Of a stretch of DNA of 64,000 nucleotides, positions 1-62,600 are shown piece by piece; within the stretch, counting starts at the first letter, position 1; each line of letters opens with the position of its first letter. Under the pieces are notes generated by a model. That model worked only from the letters and a program-made list of their open reading frames with translations. It was not told where the DNA came from and made no database searches. The stretch is from contig NC_135761.1 in assembly GCF_052425735.1 (NCBI RefSeq), forward strand, positions 37,882,001-37,946,000, written 5' to 3'. A program made the translations under genes and the position numbers. The stretch comes from Oculina patagonica (taxonomy: Eukaryota).

Positions 1-787
1 TTCTCTTTTTTTTAAAAGTCAGTATGCCGTTTTATTTAAAAGTTTAAAGGCTGAACAAATGCAACAGTAAATTTTTATATTTCAGTATGTTGAGATCGAA
101 CGCCGGCTATTTCAGTGAGACTTCAACCGCTGATGTCAATAGAATTGGAACGCTTGTAGTGTAGAAAAAAAAAAACACCACCGAGAAATCAAGCTATGCG
201 AGCGAAATGTTCGTTCGTATATCTTTATCTTAATTTTGCTGGGCAAATGTCCCAAGAGTGTGCGTCCAGCAAAAATTGTACACAATTTGATTCCTTTGCT
301 GACTAGGAAGCTAGGAGCTACGTTGTTTGATATATAAGAGGTGTAGGGCCACTATCGTGCATGTTTAGAAAGTTAAAGACTATCGCACCTTTCAAATAAA
401 TATTAGCGAAATTTCATTAAAGTATGAGCGAAATCAAACATTTGAAAAAATAAACACACTCAGTATCCATTATCAGTTTGAAGATGTTTCTTTCAAAAGT
501 TGACATTTACACGGGCACACGTCTCAAAGAGGATATCCTGCTCCGTATTGTCTCCGTGACACTCCCCGAATAAGTAGTACCGCTCTACTTTTCCTCTTTC
601 ATGGATGTGGCGTTCATGGTATTTTCTAACTACATGTAAACGGATGATCTTGGAGAGTCAATAACAGTGAAATAATGTTAAATGTTATAACCGACCACGA
701 AAATCACAAAAAAATGATTGTCACTATCTTTTTTGTGCGGTTGATAAGTAAATAAATAAATAAATAAAAATAAATTATTATTAATAA

Positions 788-1263
788 TTATTATATGGCT
801 ACAATAGTACGCGCGCTCTGATTGGCTGCTGAGCGGGCATTATTTTCTTGTAATGACCGGGCATTATGACAAATTTTCTCGGCTCGACGGTTTTTTGAGT
901 TGTGAGTGAAAGCTACTAGCGCAATTGCGAAAACGACAATAAATACCGATACCAATACCAATAAATATTTTCAATCGGGCTGAAAGAAAAATATTAGCAT
1001 ACCGATACTTCTTTAGTATGAGCAACGAAGAGAGCCACAGAGAGCGAGAGCGAGTTTCACCTCGCTGTTTTTTTTAGATATTTTTAGAATAGCGCTTAAA
1101 GGCCATATAATAAATAACTTATTAACCTCGTCCGTTCGGTCATTACAGGGCAATCTCAGACCTCGGCCTTGATGTATTGACCTCGCTGTCGCTCGGTCAA
1201 TACATCAAGGCCTCGGTCTGAGATTCCCCTGTAATGACCTCACTCTCGGTTAATAAGTAGTAT
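788..1263. mobile_element. Non-autonomous element with asymmetric inverted repeat and long terminal hairpin
   Basis: Present in copy 1 and absent at the equivalent site in copy 2 (about 7085). 5' ttattatatggc is inverted at about 1102 (gccatataataa). A palindrome of about 138 nt spans 1119-1256. Confidence 0.85.
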
Positions 1264-1274
1264 TTATTTCTTTA

Positions 1275-1690
1275 AGAAAATGTCTCGACAAAAAGATGGG
1301 ACATTTTTTCAACACATGCTTTTCTTTTTTGCTCAACTTTGAAAGGCTTCAATTGGTACTTCTTCAGGTTATTAATATGAACGAACACATTATTGCCTAT
1401 TATGACAGCCAGGACAAACAGATACCCTCCTTCTTTAGAAATGCAAGGTATGTAACCTTTTGTTTGATGGTTTAAAAATGGCTTAGAATGTAAAGGTCAA
1501 TTCAAATCATTTAGGCTTTTAGATATGCCACACTGGAACAGAGAACATGGCACAAGTCAACTTTGTTTGTACAAAACAGCCTCAGCCGTAAATTAACAAT
1601 CACCCTTTTTTATAGAAACCTTTTGTGCTTGCAAGCAGTTAATATTGATGGTTGGACGGACACCCGCCCAAAGGCACCACAGCAAAAAGT
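1275..1690 (+). pseudogene. Ulp1/SENP (C48) SUMO-protease-like exon fragments (second copy about 7100-7515)
   Basis: Pieces read HFFNTCF, an AG..GT-bounded exon VINMNEHIIAYYDS, and GWTDTRPKAPQQ. These match Ulp1 motifs FNTFF, YYDS and PQQ. The catalytic Cys segment is absent. Confidence 0.6.
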
Positions 1691-1799
1691 CCCTTCAATC
1701 ATAATAGAGGTGAGCATATCAATGTCGAGCAAGTGTCCACATCTGCTTTGTTTGCTTGTTTTAAGACATGATATATATCCAACTTCTGTCACTTAATTA

Positions 1800-2196
1800 A
1801 AGAAAAACCTCAAAATTAATCAAGCATTATTGCTTAACTAATTTATGTTATTAATTTACTGAACTATTTATAACTCTTATTTTCAATTCCTTTCTCCTGT
1901 TAGTTAATCTGTCCATATACTTAGTTTTCCACCTTTTTCGCTAAATGTCTTAAGTAAACTTAAATTTTGTTTGCGTGTTACTGTATTTGTTATCTGAATC
2001 TCTAGTACACCTGTCCCTTACAAAACTTATTGCAATAACACTAAACTTTCCAATCTTATTAGCCAATGGTGGCACTTTGTTTTATTTTTATTCTTGTTTG
2101 TAAATTTAATTAAAATTAAGGGTGTGGCCTCAAGATTCCTAAAAGAGCTCGCTAAAGATAAGTTAGTAAGGGTGCGAATAAAGTTGTTGTTGTTGT
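1800..2196 (+). mobile_element. 3' end of a LINE (CR1/L2-like); second copy about 7625-8022
   Basis: AT-rich UTR-like tract ending in aataaa followed by (gtt)n, a typical non-LTR retrotransposon tail. Confidence 0.55.
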
Positions 2197-2304
2197 ACTG
2201 TATTTTGCAGAATGCTAAACGCTTACTTCATGGAATGCAATTGGATTTTAGTCAGGTATGGATCTGCTACCTGTTAAGGTTGATAAAATGTCACAAAGCT
2301 ACAT

Positions 2305-2718
2305 GTGTATGAGAATTTAGCATCCTTACCCGTTGTCTTAAACCGTTCTGTCATAAATGACTTTGATGAGATGTGTAATTATTACGACAGTCAGCTTAGT
2401 TCAACCTTAGAGAAGGCAAATGATTTGATTATCCAGATTGAGGTCACCACTGAAACCAAGCTAACTGATTACATTGCTTATGTGGCACTTGGTCTGTCAG
2501 CCATTAATTACATCCTATGTTGTGTTGCCTGCCAGTGTCTCCATAAAATATTGTGGCGCAGTTTTCAGAAAGTACCAGAAAAGCAAATTCCTCTTCAAAC
2601 TGTGGCCATTACTCCTCGCCAGCACAAAATCTGCAAGCGTTGTGATACATCCAAGCCCATCAGTCAGAAAAATCAAAAACAGTCAGTGCGTCAAGGCCAT
2701 CACCGAGGGAAGAAATGA
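2305..2718 (+). pseudogene. env: C-terminal part of a viral-type envelope (class I fusion-like) glycoprotein; copy at 8131-8544
   Basis: Membrane-proximal helical segment (LNRSVINDFDEM...LEKANDLISQI), TM segment (YIAYVALGLSAINYILCCVAC) and basic tail. It overlaps the end of the ectodomain fragment at about 19420-19445. Confidence 0.7.
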
Positions 2719-2774
2719 TCTTAAAAGGAACTTTGCGAAAATTTGTTGAACACTGAACTTTGTTGCACACTGAT

Positions 2775-3496
2775 ATGAATTACGTAATTAGTGTTGTAGC
2801 TCTTAACTTTTCTAGGCAGATTGATGAAGTTTCAGCTATTAATTTAGCATCAGTTAGTGGTCTTTTTGCTACTTTTAAATGTCAAGTTAATGGTTGTCGC
2901 TCAAGGCAATTGATACCTGTTTTTCGTGTAGACCGCCCATTTTCATGGCGAACTTAAGATTTATTTTTAGGACTGTTTTCTGGTTTTGGTCGTTGTTTAC
3001 TTTGGAAGGTTGACAATGTGGTTGAAAAGGCCTTATGCATGATTACGTCATATGCTCAAAATTCACCACCAAGCCTCGTTTACGCGAATTATTTTCAACC
3101 TTCTGCCACTTAGGGAATTCGTTCATGATAAAATTTGCAAGTTCGCACTTTGAAAGTGAGGCTTGGTGGTGAAACTAGCCAGTCTGACGTAAACATGCAT
3201 AAGGGCTATTTGTACAGATTTGTAGTTACTTTATGGTACATGAACGTTTTCTCAATGATTTGTTTTGTGCTACCTTTCCGAGGGATTATTGTCATTTATT
3301 TAGGGAAAATAATTTTTGTGAGGTGTTGTTTACCTTGAAGTTATCTGGTTATCTTTGCCTTGCACGAAACCTTATACATTTCGCATCTCAAGAGTTTGAG
3401 AGAATTCTTGTTTTTGCAGACTTGATGGCAGCTTTGAGTGCGTTTAGTTTTCAACGTATGGTTGAACAGCATTACTCTGAGCTTGAAGATATTTGA
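2775..3496 (+). pseudogene. Accessory ORF-X (about 180 aa, unknown function) downstream of env, split by a MITE; copy about 8601-9384
   Basis: ATG at 2775. Removing the MITE (3027-3208) joins ...VDNVVE to FVQICSYFMVHERF... in frame, leaving one internal stop (2955-2957). Confidence 0.6.
3027..3208. mobile_element. MITE with long terminal inverted repeats; copy 8854-9074
   Basis: ggccttatgcatgattacgtca...ttcaccaccaagcctc is inverted as gaggcttggtggtgaa...tgacgtaaacatgcataagggc. An empty site is seen at about 19540. Confidence 0.85.
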
Positions 3497-3535
3497 TTGT
3501 GTTTGTTACTCTTTTTCCTTGTTATTTCAGTAATT

Positions 3536-3802
3536 ATGGATATGATCGAAAGGTGGACGTGTCCTTTTTGCTTAACCTTGAAAAGCTCGACCACTTTCCC
3601 AATCGATTGGCTGTGTTTGCCTTGCGATCACATCATCTGTTTGGATTGTTTCCAAGAGAAGAGAACCCTCTTGGAGAATTCTTGCCATTGCCCTTCCTGT
3701 GGACTGGTTATGCCATATGGTTCTTCAATTTATTTTTGGTTGGAGGCAACTCAAGTTGCCGTCCAAGAGCAGGAGAGAAATGAGCTTGACGAGCTAGATT
3801 AG
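3536..3802 (+). CDS. Small C3HC4 RING finger protein (retroelement accessory gene)
   Basis: Intact ORF with CPFC...CDHIICLDC...CPSC and an acidic tail. A polypyrimidine tract plus CAG acceptor lies just upstream of the ATG. Confidence 0.8.
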   Translation: MDMIERWTCPFCLTLKSSTTFPIDWLCLPCDHIICLDCFQEKRTLLENSCHCPSCGLVMPYGSSIYFWLEATQVAVQEQERNELDELD

Positions 3803-4076
3803 ATGAAAAAAGAAGTTCTATTTGACAATTAACTTTGTTTCTTTAGTCATTTTTCTTGTTGAACACTAGTAATTTCTATAATATGTTCTATGATATCTTA
3901 GATTAGAAAAAAATGGCATCTGAAATCAAATTCGTGAGTGAGTTTCAACAAAAAGAAGCGCTGTAACTTGCAAATGAAGTCAAAAGGGTGTGCTGTAAAG
4001 GGAGAGCATATGTTGGCCTTTTCAACATAGACACAACATAGCGAATAGAACAAACAGTGGAGATTGGGACAAATTA

Positions 4077-4418
4077 TATCGTTATATAGTGCCTTTCTAC
4101 TCCTCCTTATTTCACTTGCCGTTGCAGCAGGGCAAATGCAGCATCCAAAGCGGGACTACATGCAAATGTAGCATCCAAAGCTGGACTACATTTTCAGCGC
4201 TATGAATAAAGATAAATGAAACAGGTTTTCTCCTCAGTGAGGTGTTAAAGTTGATAAGTGGCAATGTTGAATGGACCAAAGTTCCTCTGCATGGAGATTC
4301 TCGTTCCTTGCAAACTTTTAACGACTTTGGCAGTGAAATAACAGCTTACCGGGTAGGAGGTTCTGGAAAATGTTACGTGACAGTATTGGGAAAATCATTT
4401 TCCCAATCCAAATCAAAT
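4077..4418 (+). pseudogene. BRICHOS precursor N-terminal fragment; copy about 9965-10308, scrap 12160-12318
   Basis: Same sequence as the 21479 copy, truncated after KCYVTVLGKSF and joined directly to the transposase fragment. Confidence 0.75.
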
Positions 4419-6125
4419 GCTATTTCTGAAGACTAAGTCCACATAAAACTTGGTGGTATTGCTGGTGGTGGATCATTTAAAATGGTCTTCCAAATTGCAA
4501 ATATACAAAAGCCGAATTCAAAGACAAACAAAGTAATCTTTGCCATGTTCCATGCTAAGGACTCATGGGCAAACCTTAAAACTGCCTTGAAGCAATATAA
4601 AAACCAAGTGAACATCCTTAAAGAAGCTAGTTGGATGTTGGTTTCAAATAAAGCTACGATACAAGTTTAAAATCAATTTAACTTGATTGTAGTTATTTTA
4701 AAACATACCATTTACATTTAAGCAAGTGGTGTTTCTCTTTGGAGATTATGAGTTTCTTTGCAAGGTATTTGGGATGGCTGGCTCCTCAGGTAAGTTGTTA
4801 TGTATAAATTTTGTATACATCAGAATGTTCACATTTAAAACAGGTAATTATAATATAGTATAATGTGCATTTTTTCCAGGTACTTATCCATGCCTCTGGT
4901 GTCTCATAACTTACCCACTGATGCAACTGTCCCGCAGCAATCCTCAGCGAAGCTTGATAGAAAAAAACCCTTAGAGAATACTCAAGAGGACTATGATCAG
5001 TTTGTTGCGGATGGTTCCTGGGCTAGTCGACAGAAGTTTTACCACAATGTCACCCATGACAAACTGCTTGACATTGAGCTAGACAAAGTAATAATTTCCT
5101 TATTGAGTCAACACTTACTATCATAGAGGGTTTTTCTGTTAGCTTTCTTACTCTTAAACATGATATAACAATTATTTTTTAACAGGTTTGTGTTCCTGGG
5201 CTTCACATCAGCTTGGGTGTTTTTAAGAAACTTCATGAGCTTGAGAATCAGTGCTTTGAGCTTCACAAAAAAGTTCATTTACAGCTGGCTGTGGGGATTG
5301 AGCAGCTTGAAGAAACCGCTGTGAATGAGAAGATGCAAAACCTCAGAGCTGCACAGCAACACCAAAGTCAGGTTTCAGAGTTAGAAGAGAAAGCAAATTC
5401 TTTACAAGAGATATTGAATTTACAGCATTTGCATTCTAATATAATAACTCTTGCCCCTGCCTACATTGAAACATTGCAGAAAGAAATAGAGAAACTCAAC
5501 GAAAATGCAAAACAGGAGGTCATGAGTATTAATCTATTTCAATTTTCTGACTCCTTAGGTCTCTAAGCCTCACAATATTAAAATTAAGAAAATTTCTGTG
5601 AAATTTCTTTGGTAAATGTTCCCATATTAATACTGGTCCAACACTTTGAACAGCTTACTGAGTCAAACTGTTATTACTTGTACAGGTGTTTGAAAAGCTA
5701 ACAAAATGATTTTCACACTATGACTAAACTATATACGGACACTCTTCTTTGACACAAAATCGTAGGAAAAGCTGGCAGATGATCAGTGGAAATTGGCTGG
5801 ACTCGAAAAGTCAAAAGGACCTTTGGTAAAGCAGCTTGACACATCTTTGAAAGAAATGAATGTGGAGAGGCAGGCATATCGTTCATACCTGCTGTAAGGT
5901 AATATTAATATTTTTTTCATAAAGATAAGAAAACCAGTATAAAAGGACATTCAGCCTCAACTTGTTTTGGTCTTACTTTCACTAACACTAGCTATTCATT
6001 TTTTTGTTTCAGGAAAACAATATAACTTAACTTTGCAATGGAATTGTTGTGAAACCAGAGGAGGTCTGCCCTTCCTTTGTTCCTCAGGCCATAGAAATCA
6101 GCACAAAATTTAAAGAGCTGTTTCA
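4419..6125 (+). pseudogene. Intron-containing Transib/RAG1-like DDE transposase fragment
   Basis: Exons read IKLGG(IA)GGGSFK, LFGDYEFLC, YPCLWC, VCVPGLHISLG and GPLVKQLD..VERQAY. They are separated by GT-AG introns and carry frameshifts. The first catalytic Asp position appears mutated. Confidence 0.65.
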
Positions 6126-6260: not shown

Positions 6261-9200
6261 ATTATTTTTCTTTTTTCTCTTTTTTTTTAAAAGTCAGTAT
6301 GCCGTTTTATTTAAAAGTTTAAAGGCTGAACAAACGCAACAGTAAATTTTTATATTTCAGTATGTTGAGATCGAACGCCGGCTATTTCAGTGAGACTTCA
6401 ACCGCTGATGTCAATAGAATTGGAACGCCTGTAGTGTAGAAAAAAAAAAACACCACCGAGAAATCAAGCTATGCGAGCGAAATGTTCGTTCGTATATCTT
6501 TATCTTAATTTTGCTGGGCAAATGTCCCAAGAGTGTGCGTCCAGCAAAAATTGTACACAATTTGATTCCTTTGCTGATTAGGAAGCTAGGAGCTACGTTG
6601 TTTGATATATAAGTGGTGTAGGGCCACTATCGTGCATGTTTAGAAAGTTAAAGACTATCGCACCTTTCAAATAAATATTAGCGAAATTTCATAAAAGTAT
6701 GAGCGAAATCAAACATTTGAAAAAATAAACACACTTCTAAATTTCAAAGACACGTTTCGGACACTCTGTATCCATTATCAGTTTGAAGATGTTTCTTTCA
6801 AAAGTTGACATTTACACGGGCACACGTCTCAAAGAGGATATCCTGCTCCGTATTGTCTCCGTGACGCTCCCCGAATAAGTAGTACCGCTCTACTTTTCCT
6901 CTTTCATGGATGTGGCGTTCATGGTATTTTCTAACTACATGTAAACGGATGATCTTGGAGAGTCAATAACAGTGAAATAATGTTAAATGTTATAACCGAC
7001 CACGAAAATCACAAAAAAATGATTGTCACTATCTTGTTTGTGCGGTTGATAAGTAAATAAATAAATAAAAATAAATTATTATTAATTATTACTTCTTTAA
7101 GAAAATGTCTCGACAAAAAGATGGGACATTTTTTCAACACATGCTTTTCTTTTTTGCTCAACTTTGAAAGGCTTCAATTGGTACTTCTTCAGGTTATTAA
7201 TATGAACGAACACATTATTGCCTATTATGACAGCCAGGACAAACAGATACCCTCCTTCTTTAGAAATGCAAGGTATGTAACCTTTTGTTTGATGGTTTAA
7301 AAATGGCTTAGAATGTAAAGGTCAATTCAAATCATTTAGGCTTTTAGATATGCCACACTGGAACAGAGAACATGGCACAAGTCAACTTTGTTTGTACAAA
7401 ACAGCCTCGGTCGTAAATTAACAATCGCCCTTTTTTATAGAAACCTTTTGTGCTTGCAAGCAGTTAATATTGATGGTTGGACGGACACCCGCCCAAAGGC
7501 ACCACAGCAAAAAGTCCCTTCAATCATAATAGAGGTGAGCATATCAATGTCGAGCAAGTGTCCACATCTGCTTTGTTTGCTTGTTTTAAGACATGATATA
7601 TATTCAACTTCTGTCACTTAATTTAAAGAAAAACTTCAAAATTAATCAAGCATTATTGCTTAACTAATTTATGTTATTAATTTACTGAACTATTTATAAC
7701 TCTTATTTTCAATTCCTTTCTCCTGTTAGTTAATCTGTCCATATACTTAGTTTTCCACCTTTTTCGCTAAATGTCTTAAGTAAACTTAAATTTTGTTTGC
7801 GTGTTACTGTATTTGTTATCTGAATCTCTAGTACACCTGTACCTTACAAAACTTATTGCAATAACACTAAACTTTCCAATCTTATTAGCCAATGGTGGTA
7901 CTTTGTTTTGTTTTTATTCTTGTTTGTAAATTTAATTAAAATTAAGGGTGTGGCCTCAAGAGTCCTAAAAGAGCTCGCTAAAGATAAGTTAGTAAGGGTG
8001 CGAATAAAGTTGTTGTTGTTGTACTGTATTTTGCAGAATGCTAAACGCTTACTTCATGGAATGCAATTGGATTTTAGTCAGGTATGGATCTGCTACCTGT
8101 TAAGGTTGATAAAATGTCACAAAGCTACATGTGTATGAGAATTTAGCATCCTTACCCGTTGTCTTAAACCGTTCTGTCATAAATGACTTTGATGAGATGT
8201 GTAATTATTACGACAGTCAGCTTAGTTCAACCTTAGAGAAGGCAAATGATTTGATTAGCCAGATTGAGGTCACCACTGAAACCATGCTAACTGATTACAT
8301 TGCTTATGTGGCACTTGGTCTGTCAGCCATTAATTACATCCTATGTTGTGTTGCCTGCCAGTGTCTCCATAAAATATTGCGACGCAGTTTTCAGAAAGTA
8401 CCAGAAAAGCAAATTCCTCTTCAAACTGTGGCCATTACTCCTCGCCAGCACAAAATCTGCAAGCGTTGTGATACACCCAAGCCCATCAGTCAGGAAAATC
8501 AAAACCAGTCAGTGCGTCAAGGCCATCACCGAGGGAAGAAATGATCTTAAAAGGAACTTTGCGAAAATTTGTTGAACACTGAACTTTGTTGCACACTGAT
8601 ATGAATTACGTAATTAGTGTTGTAGCTCTTAACTTTTCTAGGCAGATTGATGAAGTTGCAGCTATTAATTTAGCATCAGTTAGTGGTCTTTTTGCTACTT
8701 TTAAATGTCAAGTTAATGGTTGTCGCTCAAGGCAAATGATACCCGTTTTTCGTGTAGACCGCCCATTTTCATGGCGAACTTAAGATTTATTTTTAGGACT
8801 GTTTTCTGGTTTTGGTCGTTGTTTACTTTGGAAGGTTGACAATGTGGTTGAAAAGGCCTTATGCATGATTACGTCATATGCTCAAAATTCACCACCAAGC
8901 CTCGTTTACGCGAATTATTTTCAACCTTCTTCCACCTTCATGCAGTTTTCTTGTGGGTATTCTTTTTATCTTGCTCTTAGGGAATTCGTTCATGATAAAA
9001 TTTGCAAGTTCGCACTTTGAAAGTGAGGCTTGGTGGTGAAACTAGCCAGTCTGACGTAAACATGCATAAGGGCTATTTGTACAGATTTGTAGTTACTTTA
9101 TGGTACATGAACGTTTTCTCAATGATTTGTTTCGTGCTACCTTTCCAAGGGATTATTGTCATTTATTTAGGGAAAATAATTTTTGTGAGGTGTTGTTTAC

Positions 9201-9423
9201 CTTGAAGTTATCTGGTTATCTTTGCCTTGCACGAAACCTTATACATTTCGCATCTCAAGAGTTTGAGGGAATTCTTGTTTTTGCAGACTTGATGGCAGCT
9301 TTGAGTGCGTTTAGTTTTCAACGTATGGTTGAACAGCATTTTAATTTTTTTTTTTTTAATTACTCTGAGCTTGAAGATATTTGATTGTGTTTGTTACTCT
9401 TTTTCCTTGTTATTTCGGTAATT

Positions 9424-9690
9424 ATGGATATGATCGAAAGGTGGACGTGTCCTTTTTGCTTAACCTTGAAAAGCTCGACCACTTTCCCGATCGATTGGCT
9501 GTGTTTGCCTTGCGATCACATCATCTGTTTGGATTGTTTCCAAGAGAAGAGAACCCTCTTGGAGAATTCTTGCCATTGCCCTTCCTGTGGACTGGTTATG
9601 CCATATGGTTCTTCAATTTATTTTTGGTTGGAGGCAACTCAAGTTGCCGTCCAAGAGCAGGAGAGAAATGAGCTTGACGAGCTAGATTAG
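9424..9690 (+). CDS. RING finger ORF, duplicate of 3536-3802
   Basis: Identical translation. The upstream acceptor is changed from CAG to CGG. Confidence 0.75.
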   Translation: MDMIERWTCPFCLTLKSSTTFPIDWLCLPCDHIICLDCFQEKRTLLENSCHCPSCGLVMPYGSSIYFWLEATQVAVQEQERNELDELD

Positions 9691-34434: not shown

Positions 34435-34436
<2 letters not shown>

Positions 34437-51690: not shown

Positions 51691-51786
51691 CTACTGTTGC
51701 CTTCTTCAGCAAGATAAAAATGCAAATGTTCAACGGCGTCCTGTTAAAATATGTAACGAATGTGTGATAAAAACTAAATGAACTTT

Positions 51787-53060: not shown

Positions 53061-53237
53061 CAGGGTGTTCATTGGGCATCAGAGATCGGAGAATTCTCCC
53101 GCTACTACGTAGAATTCTCCGGCTAAATTTCAAAGGCCTGTACCTATTTTTTTATTAAGATGAGGAACCTTTAGAAATCATTCTCTAGTTAAATAACACT
53201 AATTCTCCTTTTATTACAATTCTTAATGAAAACTCTG
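53061..53237. mobile_element. Small MITE (CAG termini) with 6-bp TSD
   Basis: cagggtgttcatt / aatgaaaactctg, flanked by agactg on both sides. Confidence 0.75.
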
Positions 53238-53939
53238 AGACTGTAATAAAGTGACATTAAATTGATCACTTTCAGTGCATTCCTGTGAACTATTCCTTTA
53301 AATAAATGAACTTGCGCCGATGCTTACATGTTGACATAAGTTTATTTCTCTGTTTGATGTGATGTGCAGTTTGCAGATGTAAACGAATTTCTATGTGTTA
53401 CAACAATCATAATGTTTGTAAGGTAACACCCTTGGATGAACTTTATAAATTACATGTTACATCCTTAGATAAGCTTCATGAATTTCGTGTAGGTCTTTAG
53501 ATAAACTTTATAATATACATGTTACTAAGACAAATATGAGCTATTACAGAAGAATTTTTCACAATGAGTTGTCTTTTTCAAAAATCTTAATTAAGTCTTC
53601 CAGTCTTAATTGAAAATCACAGAAATAGCACAAAGGGGAATTAACTTTTCTAAATTTTAAGAACACATAATTTGTATACATTATTGTCTAATTAATATTG
53701 GGATTCTTGAAATTTAGTGTTAAGAGTTGTTTTAAAGGGCAATAAATTGATCTTCTCCCAGTCAAGGTAAAAGGTGTCTACCGGTATATTAAAAATTTTA
53801 TATTTCTACATAGCAGTTGGCTTGCTAGATATTTTAGCCACAAAACTTTGATACAGCGAGTCTGCTGTGGTAACTGCCCATAGCGACTCTTTTAGTCTGT
53901 TAATAAATATCTTGTCCAGAACTATTTTTTTAAGTGTGC

Positions 53940-55880
53940 CGAAAGTCGTTCAAATGGAGTAAAAAAAAGGTTTACATGTAAGGTAAATGTCAATGTCATT
54001 GATTTTAAAATTGTGTCATAGGTGAAAACTATTTAGAATTCAAATATTTTTTTAAAAAAAAATCAATATATTGTCTTTGGGCATAACTGGCACCTACAGG
54101 TAAATAGTCATTGGAAGAATATTGAGAAATAAATAAGATGTTTGTATAAACTAATGTGAAGTAAAAAGTGGTCTACATGCAAGTGTAATTGTCAATATAT
54201 TAATGTCATTGATTGCAATTAAATATTACAATTAAATATTTTACAAAACGTTTCAACACATTTATGGTCTTCAGGCATTACTGGCACCTAAATAACTGAC
54301 GAAAGAAGCGCACAATTTTACTTGGCTTTTTCGCCTTTTTAGCTGCGAGCTGATTCTTGATAAATAAATGAGATGTTTGTATAAACTAATGTGAAGTAAA
54401 AAGTGGTCTACATGTAAATGTAATTGTCAATATATTAATGTCATTGATTGTAAAATTGTGTAAAAGGTGAAAATGTCCATGAGTCATAAAATAGTTTTGG
54501 AAAGTTCTTCTCCAAGTAGTTGTGATGGGTTAGAAGTCATCCAGCTGTGTGGGGTAGTGATGGTTCGTCCAGATAATGTGCATAATGTATAATGTGTTTC
54601 ATGTAAGGTAGTTGCAGTTGTCAGTCTGGGTTGTGAGTAGGTTGTGAAAATGTTGTTGGAGTTTCCATAATAGTCTGTTGGCATAATGTTGGATGAAGTC
54701 TGTAGAAAGATTGTTGTCAGTTTAGTTCTGGATTTTGTCAGTGGAAGTGACAGTTGGGATTAGATTTACTTTTTAGAAGTTGTTGACGTTTCAGAAGAAG
54801 TGCTGTTTTGTAGGGCCATAGACAGGTTAGAATTTGAAGATGCTGAAGGAAATTGTTTAGACTTGATGAGATTTGATTTAAGCATTTTCTTTAATTATAA
54901 CCATGCTGTTGGCTTATTTGTTTTTGAGGTGTGGATTCGTTTGCAGCATTTTGATTTTTCGTCTGAAACAATTCTTATTCTAAAAATAATTATAGAAAAT
55001 AAATATTAATCTACCTCACACAAAAACAGATGAGATTGTTTTCGAAAGTTACTTTTTGAGATATTGACTTTCCTGTCCTTTTTTTAAATGTTAATACAAA
55101 CGAAATGAGAAAAATAATAAAAATAACAAAAATTCAGTAAATTTGGATTCATTCCCAGAAGAGTGCATTCTACAGACAAAAACAGGAATTTTTTTGTTTG
55201 GTAAATTGAAACTTATTTTACCTCAAATATCATAGAATGGACTTAGAATTCCCAAACAGGAAAAAAACATGTTCTTCTTTCCCACCCAATATAAACTTCC
55301 CTTCCCTAGAAAATGTTACCCAAAATACTTGGGTTTTTTAAAGATATTTATAATTGCAATTGTTGTGGACAAACAGAAATTTCGTATTTTACAAAATTAG
55401 GAATTATTTAAAATTCAGTAACGTGAAACTGTCCAGGACTTAATTGTTTAGAAAGTCTACTTAAGAACTTAAATAACTTGGACTTTAGGCTAGCAATATA
55501 TTACAAGCAAAAAGTATGACCTCTCCCACTCTTAACATTTTACAATTAAATATTTTACAAAACATTTCAACACATTTATGGTCTTCAGGCATTACTGGCA
55601 CCTAAATAATCGACGAAAGAAGCGTACGATTTTACTTGGCTTTTTAGCTGCGAGCTAATTCTTGATAAATAAATGAGATGTTTGCATAAACTAATGTGAA
55701 GTAAAAAGTGGTCTGCATGTAAGTGTAATTGTCAATATATTAATGTCGTTGATTGTAAAATTGTGTTAAGGTGAAAATGTCCATGAGTCATAAAATAGTT
55801 TTGGGAAGTTCTTCTCAAAGTAGTTGTGATGGGTTAGAAGTCATCCAGCTGTGTGGGGTAGTGATGGTTCGTCCAGATAC
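53940..55880 (-). mobile_element. Penelope-like element remnants with repeated pseudo-LTRs
   Basis: Block about 54228-54575 is repeated at about 55541-55878 and partially at about 53960-54240. Each full copy carries a degenerate hammerhead core on the - strand. Confidence 0.55.
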
Positions 55881-56211
55881 CTTGAAGAGCTTTGGGTGTG
55901 TCTTCTTCATATTTCCGGGGCTTTTCGTTAGTGGAAGGACTTCGCCGATTTTCGTGATTTTATCTGTGCACCACAAGGAAGAGAAGAACATCTGTGTTAC
56001 AGCACAACATGCTAACCTGCTTAGAACCCCAAGCAGCTGCATCTCTAGCATGAACAATACAGGTATCTCACAATGTTGGACATACTCCTTTGCTTTACAA
56101 TGAAAGAAACGTTTTTGCAGCCTCGTTTTCATGCAAGAGCTTCTAGGGCCATTTGACCAATGTTATGCTATGAATTTTGATATGAACTACATAATTGATT
56201 TCCATCCATTT

Positions 56212-56495
56212 GACATCGTATACAAAGCAACTTGCAGGACATGCCCATTTGCATATGTTGGGGAGAGCAAGAGAAACTGGAAATCTTGGGGGCCGAAAAC
56301 AAGCCCGGAACAAATGGAAATATCAACTTCGTGATTAAACAACTGAAACTGGCCATGACACACATCCAAGTTACACCAACTTTTTTTGAAACAGGTGTAA
56401 GCAGCAAGAACAAAAGACTGTTTCTGGAGTCCTTACATTCTTTCTTAGACAGAAACACTGTAAATGAAAGGGCATCCTTCCCAAGGGTTTATTTC
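56212..56495 (+). pseudogene. Penelope-type GIY-YIG endonuclease fragment
   Basis: IVYKATCRTCPFAYVGESKR...KRLFLESLHS..DRNTVNER. Confidence 0.85.
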
Positions 56496-57382
56496 AGCAG
56501 CGCAGAAGCTAGTTTTAGGCTGTGATGACCGAAACTCAGGAGTATATACCTTTCCTTTCAATTTGTCATAAATTTTGGGGTCCGTTATGGAGGAAAAACA
56601 TAAAGAAACAAAAAGATTAGTGTTACCGTATAACCGACAACTTACCAACATCTTACCGACACCTTACCGACACATCACCGCCTGTCGGCCGGCTGTTGGC
56701 CAACATCATAGGCAAAACTTGTCAGCAGGTTGTCAGCCGATAGACGACCGACAGACGACCGACAAACGACCAACAGTCGACCGACAGTCGGTTAGCGAGA
56801 GCTGTTCTTCACAATTACCAGATATCTTGCCCCGCAATTAGTGACTGGACAATTACAACACACTCACCTTCCCACCTTCAAATTATCTACTTTTATTTAA
56901 CAAATGGCTATTAGAGATCTATTTTTCGCTTCCTATGTTTAAAATCAAGGACATTCCCTAGACATTAGGGACTTTTCCAGGACCATAAGTGATAAGGGCA
57001 ATCGAGACAATTTTCAATTTTTATCAGTTTCGGTGATAAAGCGACGCGCATGGCATACATTTGCACGCAGAGTGTTTCGATTGAAACATGGATTTAGACT
57101 CTTGTGGAACCGATTCGCTACTTAGATATAATCATTTTGATTTGTTTTTCAGTCATAGGCTGATAGAAAATACCTTTAAGCGAGCTTGTGTTCCCGTGAT
57201 AAAATTGAGTGGAATAAAGAAAAGACATATCATAAGGTTCTTTATTGAAAACAATTAATTTGTCTCACATGAACAGTTTTGATGTCATCAAAAGTGAACT
57301 ATAATGGTAGCAATAACTTAAACTCTTACATATCTTTGTAAGTCGAACTCAAGTAATTACATATATTCATGACATCCAAGTC

Positions 57383-57841
57383 TCAGACATAATTTTCATC
57401 TTCTATCTTGTTTTGCCTTCTTATAAAGTCTTTATATATCAAATATGCGCTTGTGTCATCCATAGTGACAAGATGTAGAAGATAATTCAACCACGATTCC
57501 TTGAGATCAAGATCCAGTTTCTCAGTAACTAATGTCTCAATTGTTCTCCAGAGTTTCTTGAGGTTGATATTTGTCTTGGCCATTTCATTATAATTTATCC
57601 ACATTTCTTTCTCTTCCATCATGATAGAATCATGATGCTCTTGGGTAAGGGCATCCATCTCACATCCTTCACATGAACGTTTCAGTTCTTCATGCAATAA
57701 CCGGTTAATTTCCCGCGCAAATTCATTCTGTACAATGTTAGCGATCATCTTTCGTTGAACATAAATCTCAACATCTACCTCATCCACAAGCAGGTTCCCG
57801 CTTTTGTTTGAGTTACACATGATTTCGGCACAGCAAAACAA
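57383..57841 (-). CDS. Intronless ORF resembling Polinton/adintovirus accessory proteins
   Basis: CEGCEMDALTQEHHD motif (recalled CxGCxxDxxxQxxH), a downstream AATAAA and an upstream cluster of tgacgtca motifs. Confidence 0.45.
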   Translation of the reverse strand: MFCCAEIMCNSNKSGNLLVDEVDVEIYVQRKMIANIVQNEFAREINRLLHEELKRSCEGCEMDALTQEHHDSIMMEEKEMWINYNEMAKTNINLKKLWRTIETLVTEKLDLDLKESWLNYLLHLVTMDDTSAYLIYKDFIRRQNKIEDENYV

Positions 57842-58139
57842 GTTTGTCTTCTATCTGCTAATTGTTCAATATACTAATATTTAACCTCTTTATAATGAAA
57901 AATCTGTAGACCGCTGTGGTTAAAAATAAAATCATTACATCATTGTATCAATTATTTAATCTACCTCCCCATGACTAAAAATAACACTATTACGTCATTT
58001 ACACCCCCTCCCCCCCTCCCCCTCAATGACGTCATTCTTCTATTTTTAGATCATTTTCGATGACGTTATCCCTTGGGGTATTGTGACGTCACAGCCTCTC
58101 CCCCCTCCCTCAAGGTCAACGCTCACTTTCCTACTACTT

Positions 58140-58634
58140 CAGGGCTCAAAATAATTCTTAGATACTGACCGGTCATGCTGACCGGCCAAATCAATTTTTG
58201 CTCGGTCATGTCTCGTTTTTGACCGGTCAAAATATATGAGTATTGACTTTGAAGCAATAGCCTATTCTGCCAAAAATTTCGGCTTTTCGCCTCATAAGGT
58301 AAAACACTCGCTGTTAAAGAGTACAAGGCTTAAGCTTAAATGTTTTGATCGCTAAAAGTGTCATTTTATAAGAAAGAAATCCTTGCAGACTTCACTCAAA
58401 CTTTGAAGATTGGGTGCTTGCGCTATTTGGATTTGAGTCACTGCAAAGTTACGGACTCCTTGTTCATCGAGCTTCCTATATATTGTATTATTATACATAA
58501 TATTATATATTGTGTATTTATTTGAAAGCCGTGTATGTGACCGGTCAAAATGACCGCCGAACCAAAATTTTGTCCGGACAAATCGTCATTTTGGCCGGAC
58601 ATTGTCCGTTGGCCGGCCGTTATTTTGAGCCCTG
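58140..58634. mobile_element. hAT-like MITE
   Basis: Perfect TIR cagggctcaaaataa / ttattttgagccctg, with internal tgaccggtca repeats. Confidence 0.88.
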
Positions 58635-59416
58635 TATTTGCCTAACTTCTTTGGAACCATTTTAAAGTTTCCGGGTCCATCCAATTTCTTGCCATAACCT
58701 TTTACAAAGGCACCGCAAATACTACACACATGTAACTGACGATAAAACACTTCCAAAGGACTTGAAATCGTAACCATCCAACCACGCAGAAAGATAGTGC
58801 GCTTTTCTAATTGTTTATACACTGCCATTTTGTCCGCCAACCAGTGTCTTTTCAATTGAATTTCTGGGGGAAGCGCATCCCAATAAGACTCAATATTCCA
58901 AGTTGACCAAAAGTTTAAAACCTAATGAAAAATAAAACACAACATTGAGCGACCTTGGCCGAGAGCTCTCATTCTGGAAGTATGAGGTGGTTTAGTAATG
59001 GTATCCTTACGTTTTCTGCTGTAATATTTCATCCACGGCATATCATTATGACAATGAATAGGTGATGGTACAAGTCCACGCGTTGTGTTTAACATTGTGT
59101 ATGGTGACAGAACCCTTCATGCCAATCACGTTGCCAGGGCCAATCTTCCCAGTGAAACGTTTCAGGTTCCTCCGCAAAGTCTCCTCGAGCAGTTATTTTC
59201 CACCTGTACTGGATGTAGTAAAGACTACAATAATAACAAGGACCCATTTGATAATGTAAATAAGCCAAGGATGTTTTCCATACTCTTTCACGCGCATGTA
59301 TTATATAATATTTGTAAATTTGTTTGTTTGTTTTTCTTCCTTTTAAGTTTTAAATTAACTTTATGTAGGCGCATTTGATCATATTCATATGCTAATTTGC
59401 GCCGAATAAGTATTTA

Positions 59417-59454
<38 letters not shown>

Positions 59455-59679
59455 CATTTTCACCGTGGCAGCCAAGTCGCACTGCTCTACTTTTGTTGCC
59501 AAGTCACCCATAATTCCATCCTTATTTAAAATATCAGTTTCTGCACCTTCTCCTTCTTTCTCTTTCTTTGGTCTTGCTTCTGACACTTCTCCTAAGAAAT
59601 CTTCACAGGCTTCACTTGGTCCCATGTTACATGGTCTCATGTAACATGAGAACATGGTCTTACTTGGTCCCATGATTTT

Positions 59680-60055
59680 TCAGCTTCGGAAAGATTAAGA
59701 CTTTTAGGAATTGTTGTTATTGTCCGGTTCTCAACTGTCACTGAATCGTTCCCATCAACTCCTTTTTGATGTCTTGTTGTGTTCGTGGCATTAGCAGTTA
59801 ACTTCTGAAGCTTACGATCTTTAATAAGTTTCAGATACTGAAACCAGTCACTGTTAACTATGCCTATTAAATGGTTAATGCCATTTCATAGATCATGTTC
59901 ATCTACGTTAGTGCACACCCGGCGTAGTTCACTTTGAGTATCTGTTATAGTTACGGACAAGTCATCGCGCACTCTACACAAGTGTGATAAAGTGGTACGC
60001 ATGAGATTTTGTGAAAAAGAAAAAGTTTTGCTCCTTACTTGTTGGTGATATCCAC
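59680..60055 (-). pseudogene. Penelope-like ORF N-terminal fragment
   Basis: FSQNLMRTTLSHL...IKDRKLQKL...TIPKSLNLSEAEKS is typical of the pre-RT region of PLEs. It is AT-richer than the adjacent RT. Confidence 0.6.
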
Positions 60056-61286
60056 AGAGGTGATATAGAGGATCGTTGACCCATGGTGAGATCTTGATAA
60101 CCGAAACGCCATTGTAAAACGGGAGAAAATGGCACCACCAGCGAAGGTCAGCCTTGTTGTCAGCGGTCAAAGGGCGAACTCGGGAAGAACGATGCTCGCG
60201 CAAGGTGTTAAGAAGGGTGGACATGAAGATCCTCGCGGGACGTACGCATGCTGTCACGAAAGACATCACACCAAGCAAAGACTGGAGATCTTGGTGGGAC
60301 ACCTGATTGGCTTCCAACAAAGAGGAACAGCGATGCGTAAGTTCAAGAAGGCGATCGGGGGTAACCGAGATTGTCATGTCATCCGTGTTAATCAAAATCC
60401 CAAGGAAAACCATAGAAGTGCTCGGTGGCGACTCTTTTTCAGGCGACGATTCCAAACCAAGAGATGCCAAAAGACTGCCTAGGGTATGAAAGGCCTCGCT
60501 AGATTTTTCCGGAATTTCAGCGCCACCAAAGTCATCAATGTAATTAGTACAATGAAATCCAAGATCTTCATACATGTGCGTGACAGCGGAAGTGGTGCGT
60601 TGACACATCATGGCCGAAGACCGAAGCCCGAAAGGTGGAGCAACATCAAAATAAAGGAAACCATTGTGACGGTAGCCGAGCAGATTGTAATCGCGCGGGT
60701 CAATACGGAGCTGTTGATAGGCGCGGCTGAGGTCCATTTTGAAAACGTGACAATGGTGGCCTTTGCGGCAGATGATCTCCAATAACGCATCTACCCCGGG
60801 AAGGCGCAGCTTAAATGGGTCCCCAAGATACGAGGAAGCTGAAATGCCTGTGTTTACTGATTGGTCGCGAGGAAAGCTGAGGTCGACAACAACACGTGGC
60901 TTGCCAGTTTTACTGTAGGCGACTTGAAGAGGCGAGGTTACCAAGGCTGAGCAGAGTGGATTAGACGAAAAGGGGCCGCAGGCAGAACCAAGAGTACATT
61001 TGCGGGTGAGGTAATTGTCAATTATGCCCGGGCTTGATAATGCAGACCCGTGGTTCTTGAACGAAGAAAGAGGGGGTACGTTGCTGGAATAGCCAACCGG
61101 CCAACCAAATTCGAGAAAATCGCACAATTGTGAGTCGGAGTAGTTTACAAGACGACGTCGCCACTCTGGAATATTCAGCTTTGAAGGAACGGGTATGCGG
61201 AGCGTAAAGGCGTTTGGGCCGGAAGAACGTTGCAGGCGAGCATGAAGGGCGATGAGGTGCGAAGTTAAGGCAGGTTTTGTAGGCAA
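60056..61286 (-). CDS. Reverse transcriptase of a DIRS/Ngaro-like retrotransposon, 3'-truncated before RNase H and YR
   Basis: LEFGWPVGY, NHGSA, RVVVDLS, DLSRAYQQ, PFGLRSS, YIDDF, FLGI and DLRWW. The frame is uninterrupted. Confidence 0.92.
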
Positions 61287-61475
61287 CCGAGGAACGCTGG
61301 GGGAAGGAGGCGAGGTCGAAGTAGCGGAGAGCGGCGAAGAGGTGGTGGGGAACCGAGGAGCGCAAGTAGGAAGGTGCGAGATTGGACTGGATGTAGCAGC
61401 GACCTCTGTGGCGGTAGAAGTGGTAAACGCTGAAGAAGGTGGGCAGTGGGTGAAGGTAGGGGACGTAGAGGCTAG

Positions 61476-62600
61476 TCAGTCGCTAGAAACTGGATCGGTG
61501 CGTCGAGAAGGAACAGGAAATTTACGTTTTGGGCAGCTAAGGGCCTGATGGTCTGAACGTTTGCACACAACGCAAACGTGGAGTTTTGGGCAGTCAGAGG
61601 CTGAGCAGTCGTTATACCATGGATCGCAGATCTGGTGGCGAGGAATGGTTGGCTGGGATGGCACAGGAGGGGTGGTCGTTTTAGTAGAAGACTTTCCGGT
61701 GGTAGAAGGGGCTGTTGGTAGGAGCGTAGAGGGGGTGAAAAAAGACTGCTTTAGGTGATCGAAGTTGTCCCCCCACTTGACCAGGCCCAGTTCTATGGAG
61801 CGGAGAACTTTGTAATGAAAAGAGCGGACAGCAGACCACTGGTAAGTGGAAGCTAAAACCATCAGTTGGTGAAAGTGAGTGATGTAGGCGGCCATAGATG
61901 GGGAAGTCACGTTCTGCTGTATGATAACCAGAAAACTCGCGCAAAACTCAGCTAAGGAAAGATCCGAATAAAGTTTAGGCTCACCTGGTGAGTAAATATG
62001 CGGCCATTGTTGTGGGAAAAGCGTTTTTTGTGGAGCTTTTAGGTCCCCCAAAGATTTCCCAGCTGTGGAATCCGATGTAGTGGCGGCTTGCGAAGGGTGT
62101 TCAAGCTTTGCCAGCTGCAAACGAAGCTCGAGCTTCCGAATTTCCAGCTCCTGCGTCTCCTTGTGAAGCTGTAATCGACAAATGTCGTCCGCTGAAACTG
62201 GGGGCGTTCCGAGAGGTTGTTGTGCTGTGATCCCTGATGGAATTTCTTGCGCTGGCGGTTTCACAGCGTCAGGTGTTGGTTCCCGCTTCTTTAAGGCTGA
62301 CGAAGATTTAGGAATAGCTCCAGAGCCAGGTTTCTTTGCGCTTTTAGACTTTCGATCGGCAACTGGTGGCGGAGAGTGCGATCGCTCGGCAAGGAACTGC
62401 TCGGCTGAATTTTCATCGAGCGACGGAAAGTCCGGAAACGTGTCCCATTGGAACTCTGGGCTCAGATGGCGAAGACTGTAATGTGTGGAATGCGAAGGTA
62501 GAGACGATCGAATAAACGGATGAATAAACGAATCGAATAAACGAATCTTACAACGAGCAAACAGAGCGAAAGCTACAACACGAGGACGCGAACATGATAC
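61476..62600 (-). CDS. Gag-like ORF1 of the DIRS/Ngaro-like element
   Basis: Coiled coil, YQWSAVRSFH..VLRSIELG..KW, and C-terminal CCCH-like plus CX2CX4HX4C fingers. The frame stays open upstream of 62264 to about 62600 without an ATG. Confidence 0.85.
   Translation of the reverse strand, partial: VSCSRPRVVAFALFARCKIRLFDSFIHPFIRSSLPSHSTHYSLRHLSPEFQWDTFPDFPSLDENSAEQFLAERSHSPPPVADRKSKSAKKPGSGAIPKSSSALKKREPTPDAVKPPAQEIPSGITAQQPLGTPPVSADDICRLQLHKETQELEIRKLELRLQLAKLEHPSQAATTSDSTAGKSLGDLKAPQKTLFPQQWPHIYSPGEPKLYSDLSLAEFCASFLVIIQQNVTSPSMAAYITHFHQLMVLASTYQWSAVRSFHYKVLRSIELGLVKWGDNFDHLKQSFFTPSTLLPTAPSTTGKSSTKTTTPPVPSQPTIPRHQICDPWYNDCSASDCPKLHVCVVCKRSDHQALSCPKRKFPVPSRRTDPVSSD

Follow-up and report, generated by a model that had tools for sequence, protein, structure and literature searches.

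Strand polarity of a repeat-rich locus in the coral Oculina patagonica: a tandem-duplicated pseudogene array or a divergent piRNA cluster?

Why do the recognizable coding fragments of a coral locus fall on one strand on its left side and on the other strand on its right side? The window, i.e., the whole stretch of 64,000 nucleotides analyzed here, lies on Oculina patagonica chromosome CM126638.1 at ~37.88–37.95 Mb. An earlier note had read it as an archive of transposon and virus fragments within a bidirectional piRNA locus. We found that the fragments do switch strand, in two blocks, across a CpG-rich centre. When both strands were scanned, all credible Pfam matches left of 34 kb were on the + strand and all those right of 45 kb on the - strand. 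On the opposite strands, no Pfam family was detected at E<=0.01 in 37 pieces of at least 70 aa in the left arm (-), where a 235-aa piece was also without a Pfam match, or in 37 pieces in the right arm (+). However, the evidence for the strand switch was thinner than had been claimed: with copies collapsed, only about 7–9 sequence-verified independent fragments remained (~4–5 classes on the left and 3–4 on the right). For 7–9 fragments, a perfect two-block pattern with any split and either polarity has a chance probability of 0.03–0.09; with the split fixed at the CpG-rich patches and the polarity as seen, p is ~0.002–0.008. The orientation bias persisted among verified classes after duplications were collapsed, but the excess of long ORFs on + in the left arm shrank from 54:31 (+:-) to 32:22. 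In the right arm the corresponding excess was gone once a Ngaro-like element was removed (17 pieces of 80 aa or more on each strand).

The identity of the fragments was also revised. BRICHOS, Kazal and tyrosine recombinase (YR) on + in the left arm, and Crypton, Copia and Ngaro gag/RT on - in the right arm, were recovered as the earlier note had named them, whereas RING (+) and a P2X7-like piece (-) gave weak matches. Neither Pfam nor PDB sequence searches gave support for Ulp1, env, Transib/RAG1-like, P-like, kinase, L1, Polinton-like or GIY-YIG. Roughly half of the transposon and virus fragments named in the earlier note were unverified, and several left pieces were of host-gene type, so that the structure assumed there held up only in part.

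Direct duplication within the window accounted for 77% of positions 1–30.6 kb, as against 0.5% for inverted duplication. The copies were 79–96% identical, in direct orientation and with module order kept. The uniform + orientation of the left arm is mostly a matter of descent through this duplication. Its features are as follows.

1–6113, +, unit A copy 1, made up of several decayed coding fragments (self-blastn and Pfam)
6275–12140, +, unit A copy 2, duplicated in tandem from copy 1 (94.6%, 96.2% and 91.1% identity)
12832–17130, +, C-D element copy 1, YR-type and Crypton-like (match to Logan contig L002)
17628–18824, +, module E copy 1, a broken single-exon TM+BRICHOS pseudogene (BRICHOS Pfam matches of its paralogues)
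19801–22524, +, second tandem unit of C-D and E, C partial (C 92.7% identical to copy 1, E 84% to E copy 1)
22526–23019, +, RING-finger fragment, paralogue of that in unit A (78% identical to 3381–3906)
24646–27650, +, third tandem unit of C-D and E, with an internal deletion (self-comparison, L002 match and break counts)
28083–28919, +, isolated fourth copy of module E (BRICHOS at 28079–28369, E 6.9e-5)
29067–33043, +, unique stretch with several ORFs of 90–173 aa, without Pfam match
33182–33323, +, Kazal-domain exon fragment of a host-type gene (Kazal_2 E 1.1e-8, Kazal_1 E 1.2e-7)

In self-blastn, segments 1–790, 1264–5473 and 5469–6113 matched 6275–12140 directly at 91–96%. Unit A carries the N-terminal half of a TM+BRICHOS pseudogene, a weak RING match (3497–3799, +, Pfam E 0.006) and the C-terminal end of DUF1280 (4437–4667, +, Pfam E 7.2e-12), together with a coiled-coil ORF and putative Ulp1-like and membrane-protein ORFs. 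The YR-type element occurs in three copies with a + strand ORF that matched relatives at E 6.7e-36; its protein family had 32 matches among 1.84 billion representatives, and one relative (P0134) contained Phage_integrase at E 1.8e-4. All copies of this element are dead. Copy 1 covers almost the whole coding region, with at least two frame changes and ~6 in-frame stops, and the third copy has at least one frame change and ~5 stops. Copy 1 is also broken by one 1.9-kb insertion (14770–16678), around which neither terminal repeats nor target-site duplications were found. Positions 2196–4755 of L002 matched copy 1 at 85–90% nucleotide identity. Since C and D are contiguous in this independent contig, segment 14770–16678 is a later insertion and the abutment of D and E a deletion: D adjoins the middle of E at 26945/26947 because of the internal deletion in the third copy. 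The junction order of modules F, C-D and E was seen three times, with copy-specific deletions. Abutting fragments, as previously described, were present at 26945/26947 and also between BRICHOS and DUF1280 near 4.42 kb.

Module E copy 1 has paralogues at 21278–22260 (84%) and 28083–28707 (92%). BRICHOS Pfam matches were found in two further copies, and the match at 21624–22064 (+, E 3.9e-6) was above the Pfam cut-off. RING families matched the 22642–22944 region (+) at E 0.0017–0.006. For the unique stretch at 29067–33043, the Transib/RAG1-like and P-like labels were not borne out: no PDB match to RAG1, Transib or P-element transposase was found at E<=1. The Kazal_2 match spans 33182–33433 (+); the 3' end of the exon is an intact consensus donor (AAG/GTAAGT), and a convincing acceptor was not found. 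The Kazal, BRICHOS and RING domains are typical of host genes and not of transposons, and a Kazal piece with its own + strand donor points to shuffled genomic DNA, not captured invaders.

The right arm has three features, all on the - strand.

48358–52501, -, run of transposon-derived fragments that NCBI joins in a single gene model of 278 aa
57383–59673, -, NCBI gene model ACROYT_G015026, hypothetical, 225 aa (main exon is the 155-aa ORF 57386–57850)
59886–62606, -, young, GC-rich (0.5) DIRS/Ngaro-like retroelement fragment (RVT_1 E 3.9e-8)

The first run contains a Crypton-type end (DUF3504, 48564–48821, -, E 6e-6), a Copia-type GAG-pre-integrase piece (gag_pre-integrs, 51881–52078, -, E 3.7e-4) and a cysteine-rich, tandemly repeated piece with a weak P2RX7_C match (51100–51411, -, E 0.026), all by Pfam; tandem repeats occupy 51070–51692. 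In the Ngaro-like element, a gag-like ORF (376 codons) and an RT ORF (529 codons) are both open. RVT_1 spans 59889–61475 (-) and the tblastn footprint 59913–61862. At its 3' side the element is cut short, and RNase H, recombinase and terminal repeats were not found in it.

Between the arms lies the centre, whose 10 longest ORFs had no credible Pfam family (the sole match was marginal, E 0.046).

34401–45000, no strand, mostly unique centre (5.5% duplicated; CpG o/e ~1 over 36–43.5 kb)
39208–39750, -, CpG-island-like patch, candidate leftward non-coding first exon (GC 0.46, o/e 1.14)
42501–42979, +, second CpG-rich patch, candidate rightward first exon (GC 0.46, o/e 1.16)

The CpG-rich patches proper (39251–39750 and 42501–42750) are ~3 kb apart and flanked by CpG-poor DNA; outside transposons, CpG-island-like patches occurred only at these two sites. 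The claim of a CpG-richer centre stands with regard to the patches, but o/e was near 1 also at 48–52 and 57–64 kb. Similarly, both outward donors predicted at ~39213 and 42974 exist, one at the left end of the first patch (AAG/GTAAGG, 39208–39215, -) and one at the right end of the second (CAG/GTGAGT, 42972–42979, +), but the AGGTRAGK consensus was at chance frequency (8 observed vs 6.25 expected). A 108-aa - strand ORF at 39208–39750 stops before the donor, so coding continuity is absent.

We consider there to be about an even chance that the locus is a tandem-duplicated array of transposons and pseudogenes with a few independent insertions, a gene-poor "graveyard" whose polarity is mainly a by-product of its construction. 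Two ancestral units were repeatedly duplicated in place, in tandem and in direct orientation, to give the left 30 kb. These were unit A (~6 kb) and a ~5–7-kb unit in which a dead YR (Crypton-like) element lay beside the TM+BRICHOS pseudogene. Direct tandem duplication lets each copy retain the + orientation. After duplication, deletions and one 1.9-kb insertion altered the copies, and deletions leave internal fragments abutting without termini. The right arm probably represents ~4 independent transposon insertions that may be on - by chance, the only strong one being the Ngaro-like gag/RT fragment, which is recent and still open. The centre, rich in CpG, may be unmethylated unique DNA holding one or two promoters. 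The polarity pattern can be explained without a dedicated function. Direct copies, module order, copy-specific deletions and insertions and decayed coding content are all as in tandem-duplicated repeat or pseudogene arrays formed by unequal exchange. However, duplication alone fails to explain polarity within the ancestral units, where 4–5 unrelated classes (including RING/BRICHOS, DUF1280, the YR element and Kazal) are all +, or that of the four right-arm fragments (4/4 verified classes on -). The polarity switch also coincides with the independently defined CpG-island-like patches, and CpG depletion on either side of an undepleted centre would be expected from two diverging germline-transcribed, methylated units. 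Invertebrate gene-body methylation is the basis for reading CpG-poor flanks as methylated transcription units.

A divergent piRNA cluster, the reading of the earlier note, is less likely. Transcripts leading leftward from ~39.7 kb and rightward from ~42.5 kb would run antisense to the fragments, giving antisense piRNAs that silence the families, and tandem duplication would be mere amplification of the archive. What defines a piRNA cluster is a dense population of 1U small RNAs of 24–31 nt, together with long antisense precursors that are single-stranded. Consistent with such a cluster, the verified fragments form a perfect two-block pattern antisense to divergent transcription, are dead and belong to several superfamilies, and CpG-rich patches with outward donor-like sites (39.2–39.75 kb and 42.5–42.98 kb) lie between CpG-depleted flanks. 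Cnidarians, the phylum to which this coral belongs, have hundreds of mostly unistranded clusters (402/457 single-stranded in Nematostella; PMC5731801), and either arm would be conceivable as such a cluster; those clusters, however, were defined by small-RNA mapping and this locus from sequence. In flamenco, insertions share one orientation (10.1101/599852). As in flamenco-type unistrand clusters of the Drosophila soma, the fragments within each arm are co-oriented, dead and from several superfamilies, and the putative promoter-proximal exon has a splice donor. Unlike flamenco-type clusters, the locus has two arms of opposite polarity, a left arm that is largely two tandem-duplicated units, and a share of host-gene debris (BRICHOS, Kazal and RING) of no defence value; left-arm polarity is moreover largely inherited via duplication. 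Mammalian pachytene clusters use divergent promoters (PMC9559041), and as in bidirectional pachytene or intergenic clusters of mammals, koala included, two candidate units diverge from a CpG-rich centre. In those clusters, however, starts lie within about 500 bp of each other, and the clusters are transposon-depleted and mostly unique in sequence, whereas here the candidate starts are ~3 kb apart, too far for a shared promoter by the <500 bp limit applied to koala, and the arms are repeat-rich. The chance frequency of donor sites, the return of CpG o/e to near 1 from 48 kb (a poor fit to a long methylated right unit) and the - orientation of right-arm NCBI gene models, i.e., the elements' sense strand, also argue against a piRNA cluster. 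In addition, few clusters have been described in reef corals (47–107 per genome), and these are transposon-poor (PMC13343488), which sets a low prior for this reading.

A reading in which long introns or upstream regions of ordinary divergent host units make up the arms is unlikely; polarity would then come from the usual selection against sense transposon insertions in transcribed genes, with no piRNA involved. Such units would account for outward donors as parts of first exons and for CpG-poor, historically methylated flanks like those of invertebrate gene bodies. On the right, the donor could belong to an upstream exon of a Vasa/DDX3-type helicase gene (+, 2.6 kb past the window), as a + strand DEAD-box gene model of 323 aa without the usual N-terminal region lies downstream at window-equivalent 66.6–69.1 kb. 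However, a link from the 42974 donor to this gene was without splice support, and no coding exon was found on the left - or right + strand (0 Pfam families in the 37 + 37 pieces). Intronic antisense bias is usually moderate, not all-or-none, and left-arm orientation is already accounted for by duplication. It is very improbable that one or a few large composite mobile elements (e.g., a gene-fragment-capturing transposon with co-oriented captured pieces) make up the left arm through a single insertion history: the co-orientation of the donor-bearing Kazal exon, BRICHOS and RING with transposon ORFs and the presence of C-D on another contig would fit, but L002 homology ends at the C-D borders without BRICHOS, RING or unit A, the 1.9-kb insertion examined lacks terminal repeats and target-site duplications, and Pfam scans of the left arm detected no transposase of a capturing family.

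Two further observations concern the right arm. The Polinton-like label for ACROYT_G015026 was not borne out: this model had no Pfam match and no relative in viral contigs; P0181 was 100% identical to it over 100% of the query. The Ngaro-like RT had 388 relatives with up to 72% identity, and a 98% match was present in a chimeric MAG contig.

The left arm (1 to ~34 kb) was found to consist largely of copies of itself. In a self-comparison of the window, direct duplications covered 77% of 1-30.6 kb and inverted ones 0.5%. The first 6-kb block (unit A, 1-6113) was copied at 6275-12140 with 91-96% identity. A second unit, in which the tyrosine-recombinase-type (YR) element C-D is followed by a single-exon TM+BRICHOS pseudogene (module E), was present in 3-4 copies within 12.8-28.9 kb (79-93% identity):

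12832-18824, C-D + E unit, copy 1
19801-22524, C-D + E unit, copy 2
24646-27650, C-D + E unit, copy 3
28083-28919, isolated fourth copy of module E

Module order was constant across the C-D + E copies, and deletions differed between them. Direct paralogous blocks, with their internal order kept and junctions common to the copies, characterize this region as a tandem segmental duplication. Given this extent of direct duplication, the single orientation of the left arm is mostly inherited. The earlier note had described short internal pieces that abut without termini; such abutments are present, but they are in good part deletion or duplication junctions inside the tandem array. At 4420-4436, the N-terminal half of a BRICHOS pseudogene runs directly into the final 62 positions of a DUF1280 domain, and the next BRICHOS part resumes at 12192-12319, beyond unit A copy 2, so that this BRICHOS copy seems to have been split by the unit-A duplication. 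Besides, two of the YR-element copies are preceded by module F, a short non-coding repeat, at 19563-19820 and 23806-24061. A third module F copy, with 67-73% identity and unchanged orientation, lies at 40593-40877 in the otherwise unique centre, and a SINE- or MITE-like nature is possible for the module.

Tandem duplication can generate strand polarity in a single window, and a test of such polarity therefore requires that copies be collapsed first and that both strands be controlled symmetrically. We cut the six frames of the window, which contains no N and has a GC content of ~0.38, into stop-free pieces and scanned them against Pfam, handling both strands alike. The following fragments were recognized:

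4437-4667, +, C-terminal end of DUF1280 (Pfam E 7.2e-12)
21624-22064, +, BRICHOS (Pfam E 3.9e-6, above the curated cut-off)
28079-28369, +, BRICHOS (Pfam E 6.9e-5)
33182-33433, +, Kazal (Pfam E 1.1e-8)
left arm, +, weak RING fingers (Pfam E 0.0017-0.006)
48564-48821, -, DUF3504, a Crypton-derived recombinase end (Pfam E 6e-6)
51100-51411, -, weak P2RX7_C (Pfam E 0.026)
51881-52078, -, gag_pre-integrs of Copia type (Pfam E 3.7e-4)
59889-61475, -, RVT_1 (Pfam E 3.9e-8)

Pfam also placed two additional BRICHOS copies on + in the left arm. In the left arm, none of 37 pieces on - (70 aa or longer) matched a Pfam family at E<=0.01, and a 235-aa minus-strand piece had no Pfam match. Similarly, none of 37 plus-strand pieces in the right arm (45 kb onward) matched any Pfam family. 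The two-block polarity that had been claimed thus holds for all verified fragments, which are all on + left of 34 kb and all on - right of 45 kb, although duplication accounts for most of the uniformity on the left.

Counted once each, the verified classes on + were four (RING/BRICHOS, DUF1280, the YR element and Kazal), or five with RING and BRICHOS taken separately. Those on - were three to four: DUF3504, gag_pre-integrs and a DIRS/Ngaro-like gag/RT fragment at 59886-62606 (the RT element), plus the weak P2RX7_C. For 7-9 independent fragments, the probability of a perfect two-block arrangement was 0.03-0.09 with split and polarity both left free, and 0.002-0.008 with the polarity specified and the split placed at the CpG-rich centre. 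Among stop-free stretches of at least 80 aa, the +:- ratio in the left arm was 54:31 and became 32:22 once copies were collapsed; in the right arm it was 22:24, or 17:17 without the RT element. The polarity that remains after collapse is suggestive and not overwhelming. GC/AT skew was considered as a proxy for transcription direction and rejected, as the purine bias of the coding fragments dominates it.

L002, a Logan contig of a different sequencing run (SRR31575924), matched C-D over 2.56 kb with 79-90% nucleotide identity, and its homology ended at the C-D borders. With three window copies and a fourth on this contig, C-D has the repeated distribution of a mobile-type element. Since C and D are contiguous on L002, copy 1 gained 14770-16678 by a later insertion, and in copy 3 a deletion made D abut E at 26945/26947. 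Copies 1 and 3 cover nearly the full length of the 461-aa relative P0134 but are broken (at least 2 frame changes, ~6 stops and 1 insertion in the former; at least 1 frame change and ~5 stops in the latter), and copy 2 is partial. The protein family is rare, with 32 matches among 1.84 billion representatives (best E 6.7e-36). Its YR identity is weakly supported: one relative (P0134, 461 aa) had a Phage_integrase match below cut-off (E 1.8e-4) and another (P0148) a Phage_int_SAM_1 match (E 0.0097), but the window's own C-D pieces had no Pfam match and the family profile found no solved recombinase in the PDB at E<=1. Within the 1.9-kb insertion at 14770-16678, a 125-bp unit is repeated in tandem at 14964-15322 (2.9 copies, 99% identical) and there is a 135-bp internal repeat; no convincing target-site duplication or terminal inverted repeats were found around the insertion.

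Many other fragment names fared less well when checked with Pfam and with phmmer against all PDB chains, which include many solved transposase and recombinase chains. Ulp1 (1257-1472), P-like (31.3-33 kb; PDB query 32241-32534), kinase (33715-33918) and GIY-YIG (56104-56331, +) gained neither Pfam support nor a relevant PDB match at E<=1, and the L1 label at 45-47 kb was likewise without support from either search. The env piece (2287-2715) and the Polinton-like ORF were unsupported by Pfam and PDB and had no relatives among viral contigs. The Transib/RAG1-like piece (29067-29822) matched no Pfam family and, in the PDB, irrelevant chains at E 0.07-0.28. The P2X7-like piece (51100-51411) and the YR piece (14132-14395) also had no relevant PDB match at E<=1. 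Because these pieces are short and decayed, the unsupported labels may yet be right, but they do not count as evidence. BRICHOS, Kazal and RING are domains of host genes. The right-hand limit of the Kazal piece coincides with a consensus donor, AAG|GTAAGT, and no convincing acceptor is present; the piece is a genomic scrap of an intron-containing host gene rather than an invader. Across the whole window, no RNA family was found in Rfam at gathering thresholds and no tRNA by ARAGORN.

The centre (34.4-45 kb) was 5.5% duplicated, and its ten longest ORFs matched no credible Pfam family. At 250-bp resolution, a CpG-dense patch was seen at 39251-39750 (GC 0.43-0.49, o/e 1.0-1.2), the sole CpG-island-like 500-bp window besides the RT element and 49.75-50.25 kb, and a second patch at 42501-42750 (GC 0.46, o/e 1.16). 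The flanks at 2-35.7 kb and 43.75-48 kb were CpG-poor. The centre is therefore CpG-richer, as had been noted, than the left arm and 44-48 kb, but o/e returns to 0.75-1.0 in 48-52 kb and 57-64 kb. Both of the divergent donors in the earlier note are present in outward orientation: AAG|GTAAGG on - at 39213 and CAG|GTGAGT on + at 42974. However, they weigh little because the consensus AGGTRAGK occurs at chance level: the window contains 8 sites where 6.25 would be expected, a count reached in 26 of 100 shuffles. The minus-strand ORF upstream of the 39213 donor terminates before it, so that any exon there would be non-coding. An (ATT)20 microsatellite marks the boundary between left arm and centre (34375-34434).

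In the right arm, 47383-64000 matched chromosome CM126638.1 (64.4 Mb) at 100%, which places the window at about 37,882,001-37,946,000 of this stony-coral chromosome, and NCBI gene models were available for 47.4-64 kb and 5.7 kb beyond the window. Those within it were:

48358-52501, -, 278-aa model fusing Crypton-, P2RX7_C- and Copia-type scraps
57383-59673, -, ACROYT_G015026, hypothetical protein, 225 aa
59886-62465, -, 827-aa model with RVT_1

A 155-aa ORF at 57386-57850 (-) was 100% identical to ACROYT_G015026. All three models are transposon-derived ORFs on the sense strand of the elements and are likely annotation false positives. The RT element (RVT_1 E 3.9e-8; 388 relatives, generically named in their sources) appears young, with GC 0.5, undepleted CpG and open gag-like (376 codons) and RT (529 codons) ORFs. 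The copy is truncated on its 3' side, with no RNase H or recombinase found downstream of the RT and no terminal repeats in 56.5-64 kb; the tyrosine recombinase that DIRS/Ngaro elements have in place of an integrase, and their split or inverted terminal repeats, were not seen here, but a truncated copy could still belong to the family. Beyond the window, a gene model of 323 aa with DEAD and Helicase_C domains (578-3088 on - of locus L003) corresponds to 66586-69096 on +. Among solved structures, Drosophila Vasa (2db3, E 2.2e-60) was the closest relative and ranked above DDX3X. As the model is without the usual N-terminal region, it may be a truncated vasa/PL10 paralogue adjoining the putative cluster.

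The best supported explanation, to which we give about an even chance, is a repeat and pseudogene graveyard. The left arm was built by serial tandem duplication and deletion, and the right arm would be a handful of independent insertions, with the polarity largely a historical by-product. The window would then be an ordinary tandem-duplicated repeat array and a useful caution.

The defining marks of a piRNA cluster are a high density of 24-31 nt small RNAs that mostly map uniquely and are biased to 5' U, and also long single-stranded precursor transcripts across the locus. Our literature search found no small-RNA studies of O. patagonica. Orientation-biased unistrand clusters such as flamenco (10.1101/599852) are established, as are divergent-promoter clusters, both mammalian pachytene (PMC9559041) and koala intergenic (10.1101/599852). 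The piRNA trap of the earlier note, with divergent antisense precursors from the centre, is possible but doubtful. The polarity left after collapsing, the outward-pointing donors and the methylation-like CpG pattern fit it, and clusters are established in cnidarians, many of them unistranded (PMC5731801). However, host debris makes up part of the "archive" and the right-arm NCBI models are on the sense strand of the elements. Also, described coral clusters are few and transposon-poor (PMC13343488), which counts against a flamenco-like coral locus and would make one notable if true. In flamenco-like unistrand clusters, transposon fragments lie predominantly in one orientation, antisense to the precursor; each arm of the window has its verified fragments in one orientation, which may or may not be antisense to a putative transcript, and 77% of the left arm is direct duplication. 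In koala bidirectional clusters, divergent starts lie less than about 500 bp apart at one promoter (10.1101/599852), whereas the window's candidate first exons and CpG patches (39.2-39.75 and 42.5-42.98 kb), as proxies from sequence alone, are separated by about 3 kb (no less than about 2.8 kb), suggesting two promoters at best and not one shared bidirectional promoter.

Somewhat less probable again is a genuine divergent flamenco-like trap in its full form, in which two outward precursors from 39-43 kb would run antisense to dead copies of at least 8 element or gene classes, the archive having been amplified by tandem duplication beside a truncated vasa-type helicase paralogue. If true, it would give non-bilaterians their first piRNA trap that is both anatomically resolved and orientation-selected. 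The kind of locus is already known, and the added interest would be a non-bilaterian with visible orientation selection. Strand-specific piRNAs from both arms would make this a cnidarian locus with flamenco-like orientation selection and would bear on the question whether transposon defence by "trap" logic is older than the bilaterians. We consider it improbable that the arms are introns of ordinary divergent host genes: the DEAD-box model on + at 66.6-69.1 kb underlies this idea and transposons inside such introns are usually antisense-biased, but Pfam detected no opposite-strand exons in either arm (37 + 37 pieces). A left arm that is one composite gene-capturing element is highly improbable, as the homology of L002 stops at the C-D borders.

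Several smaller features were observed in the right arm. Nested tandem repeats at 51070-51692 (244 bp x1.8; 74-75 bp x3) duplicate the cysteine-rich P2RX7_C-like piece (-). Direct repeats at 54219-54575 and 55532-55879, 93% identical, 1.3 kb apart and beside the GIY-YIG-labelled ORF (56104-56331, +), had no convincing target-site duplication or terminal inverted repeats around them and may themselves be the terminal repeats belonging to an LTR or Penelope-like element. An (ATT)14 microsatellite (59417-59458) lies just past the truncated end of the RT element. Besides, 60003-60809 was 98.8% identical to L001:1-807, the end of a "Rhodothermaceae bacterium" contig (JBGRQB010000024.1, MAG GCA_041725875.1) on which these 807 bp of coral RT-like sequence are followed by bacterial EF-G and 5'-nucleotidase genes; chimerism or contamination in the assembly of a coral-associated sample is the probable cause.
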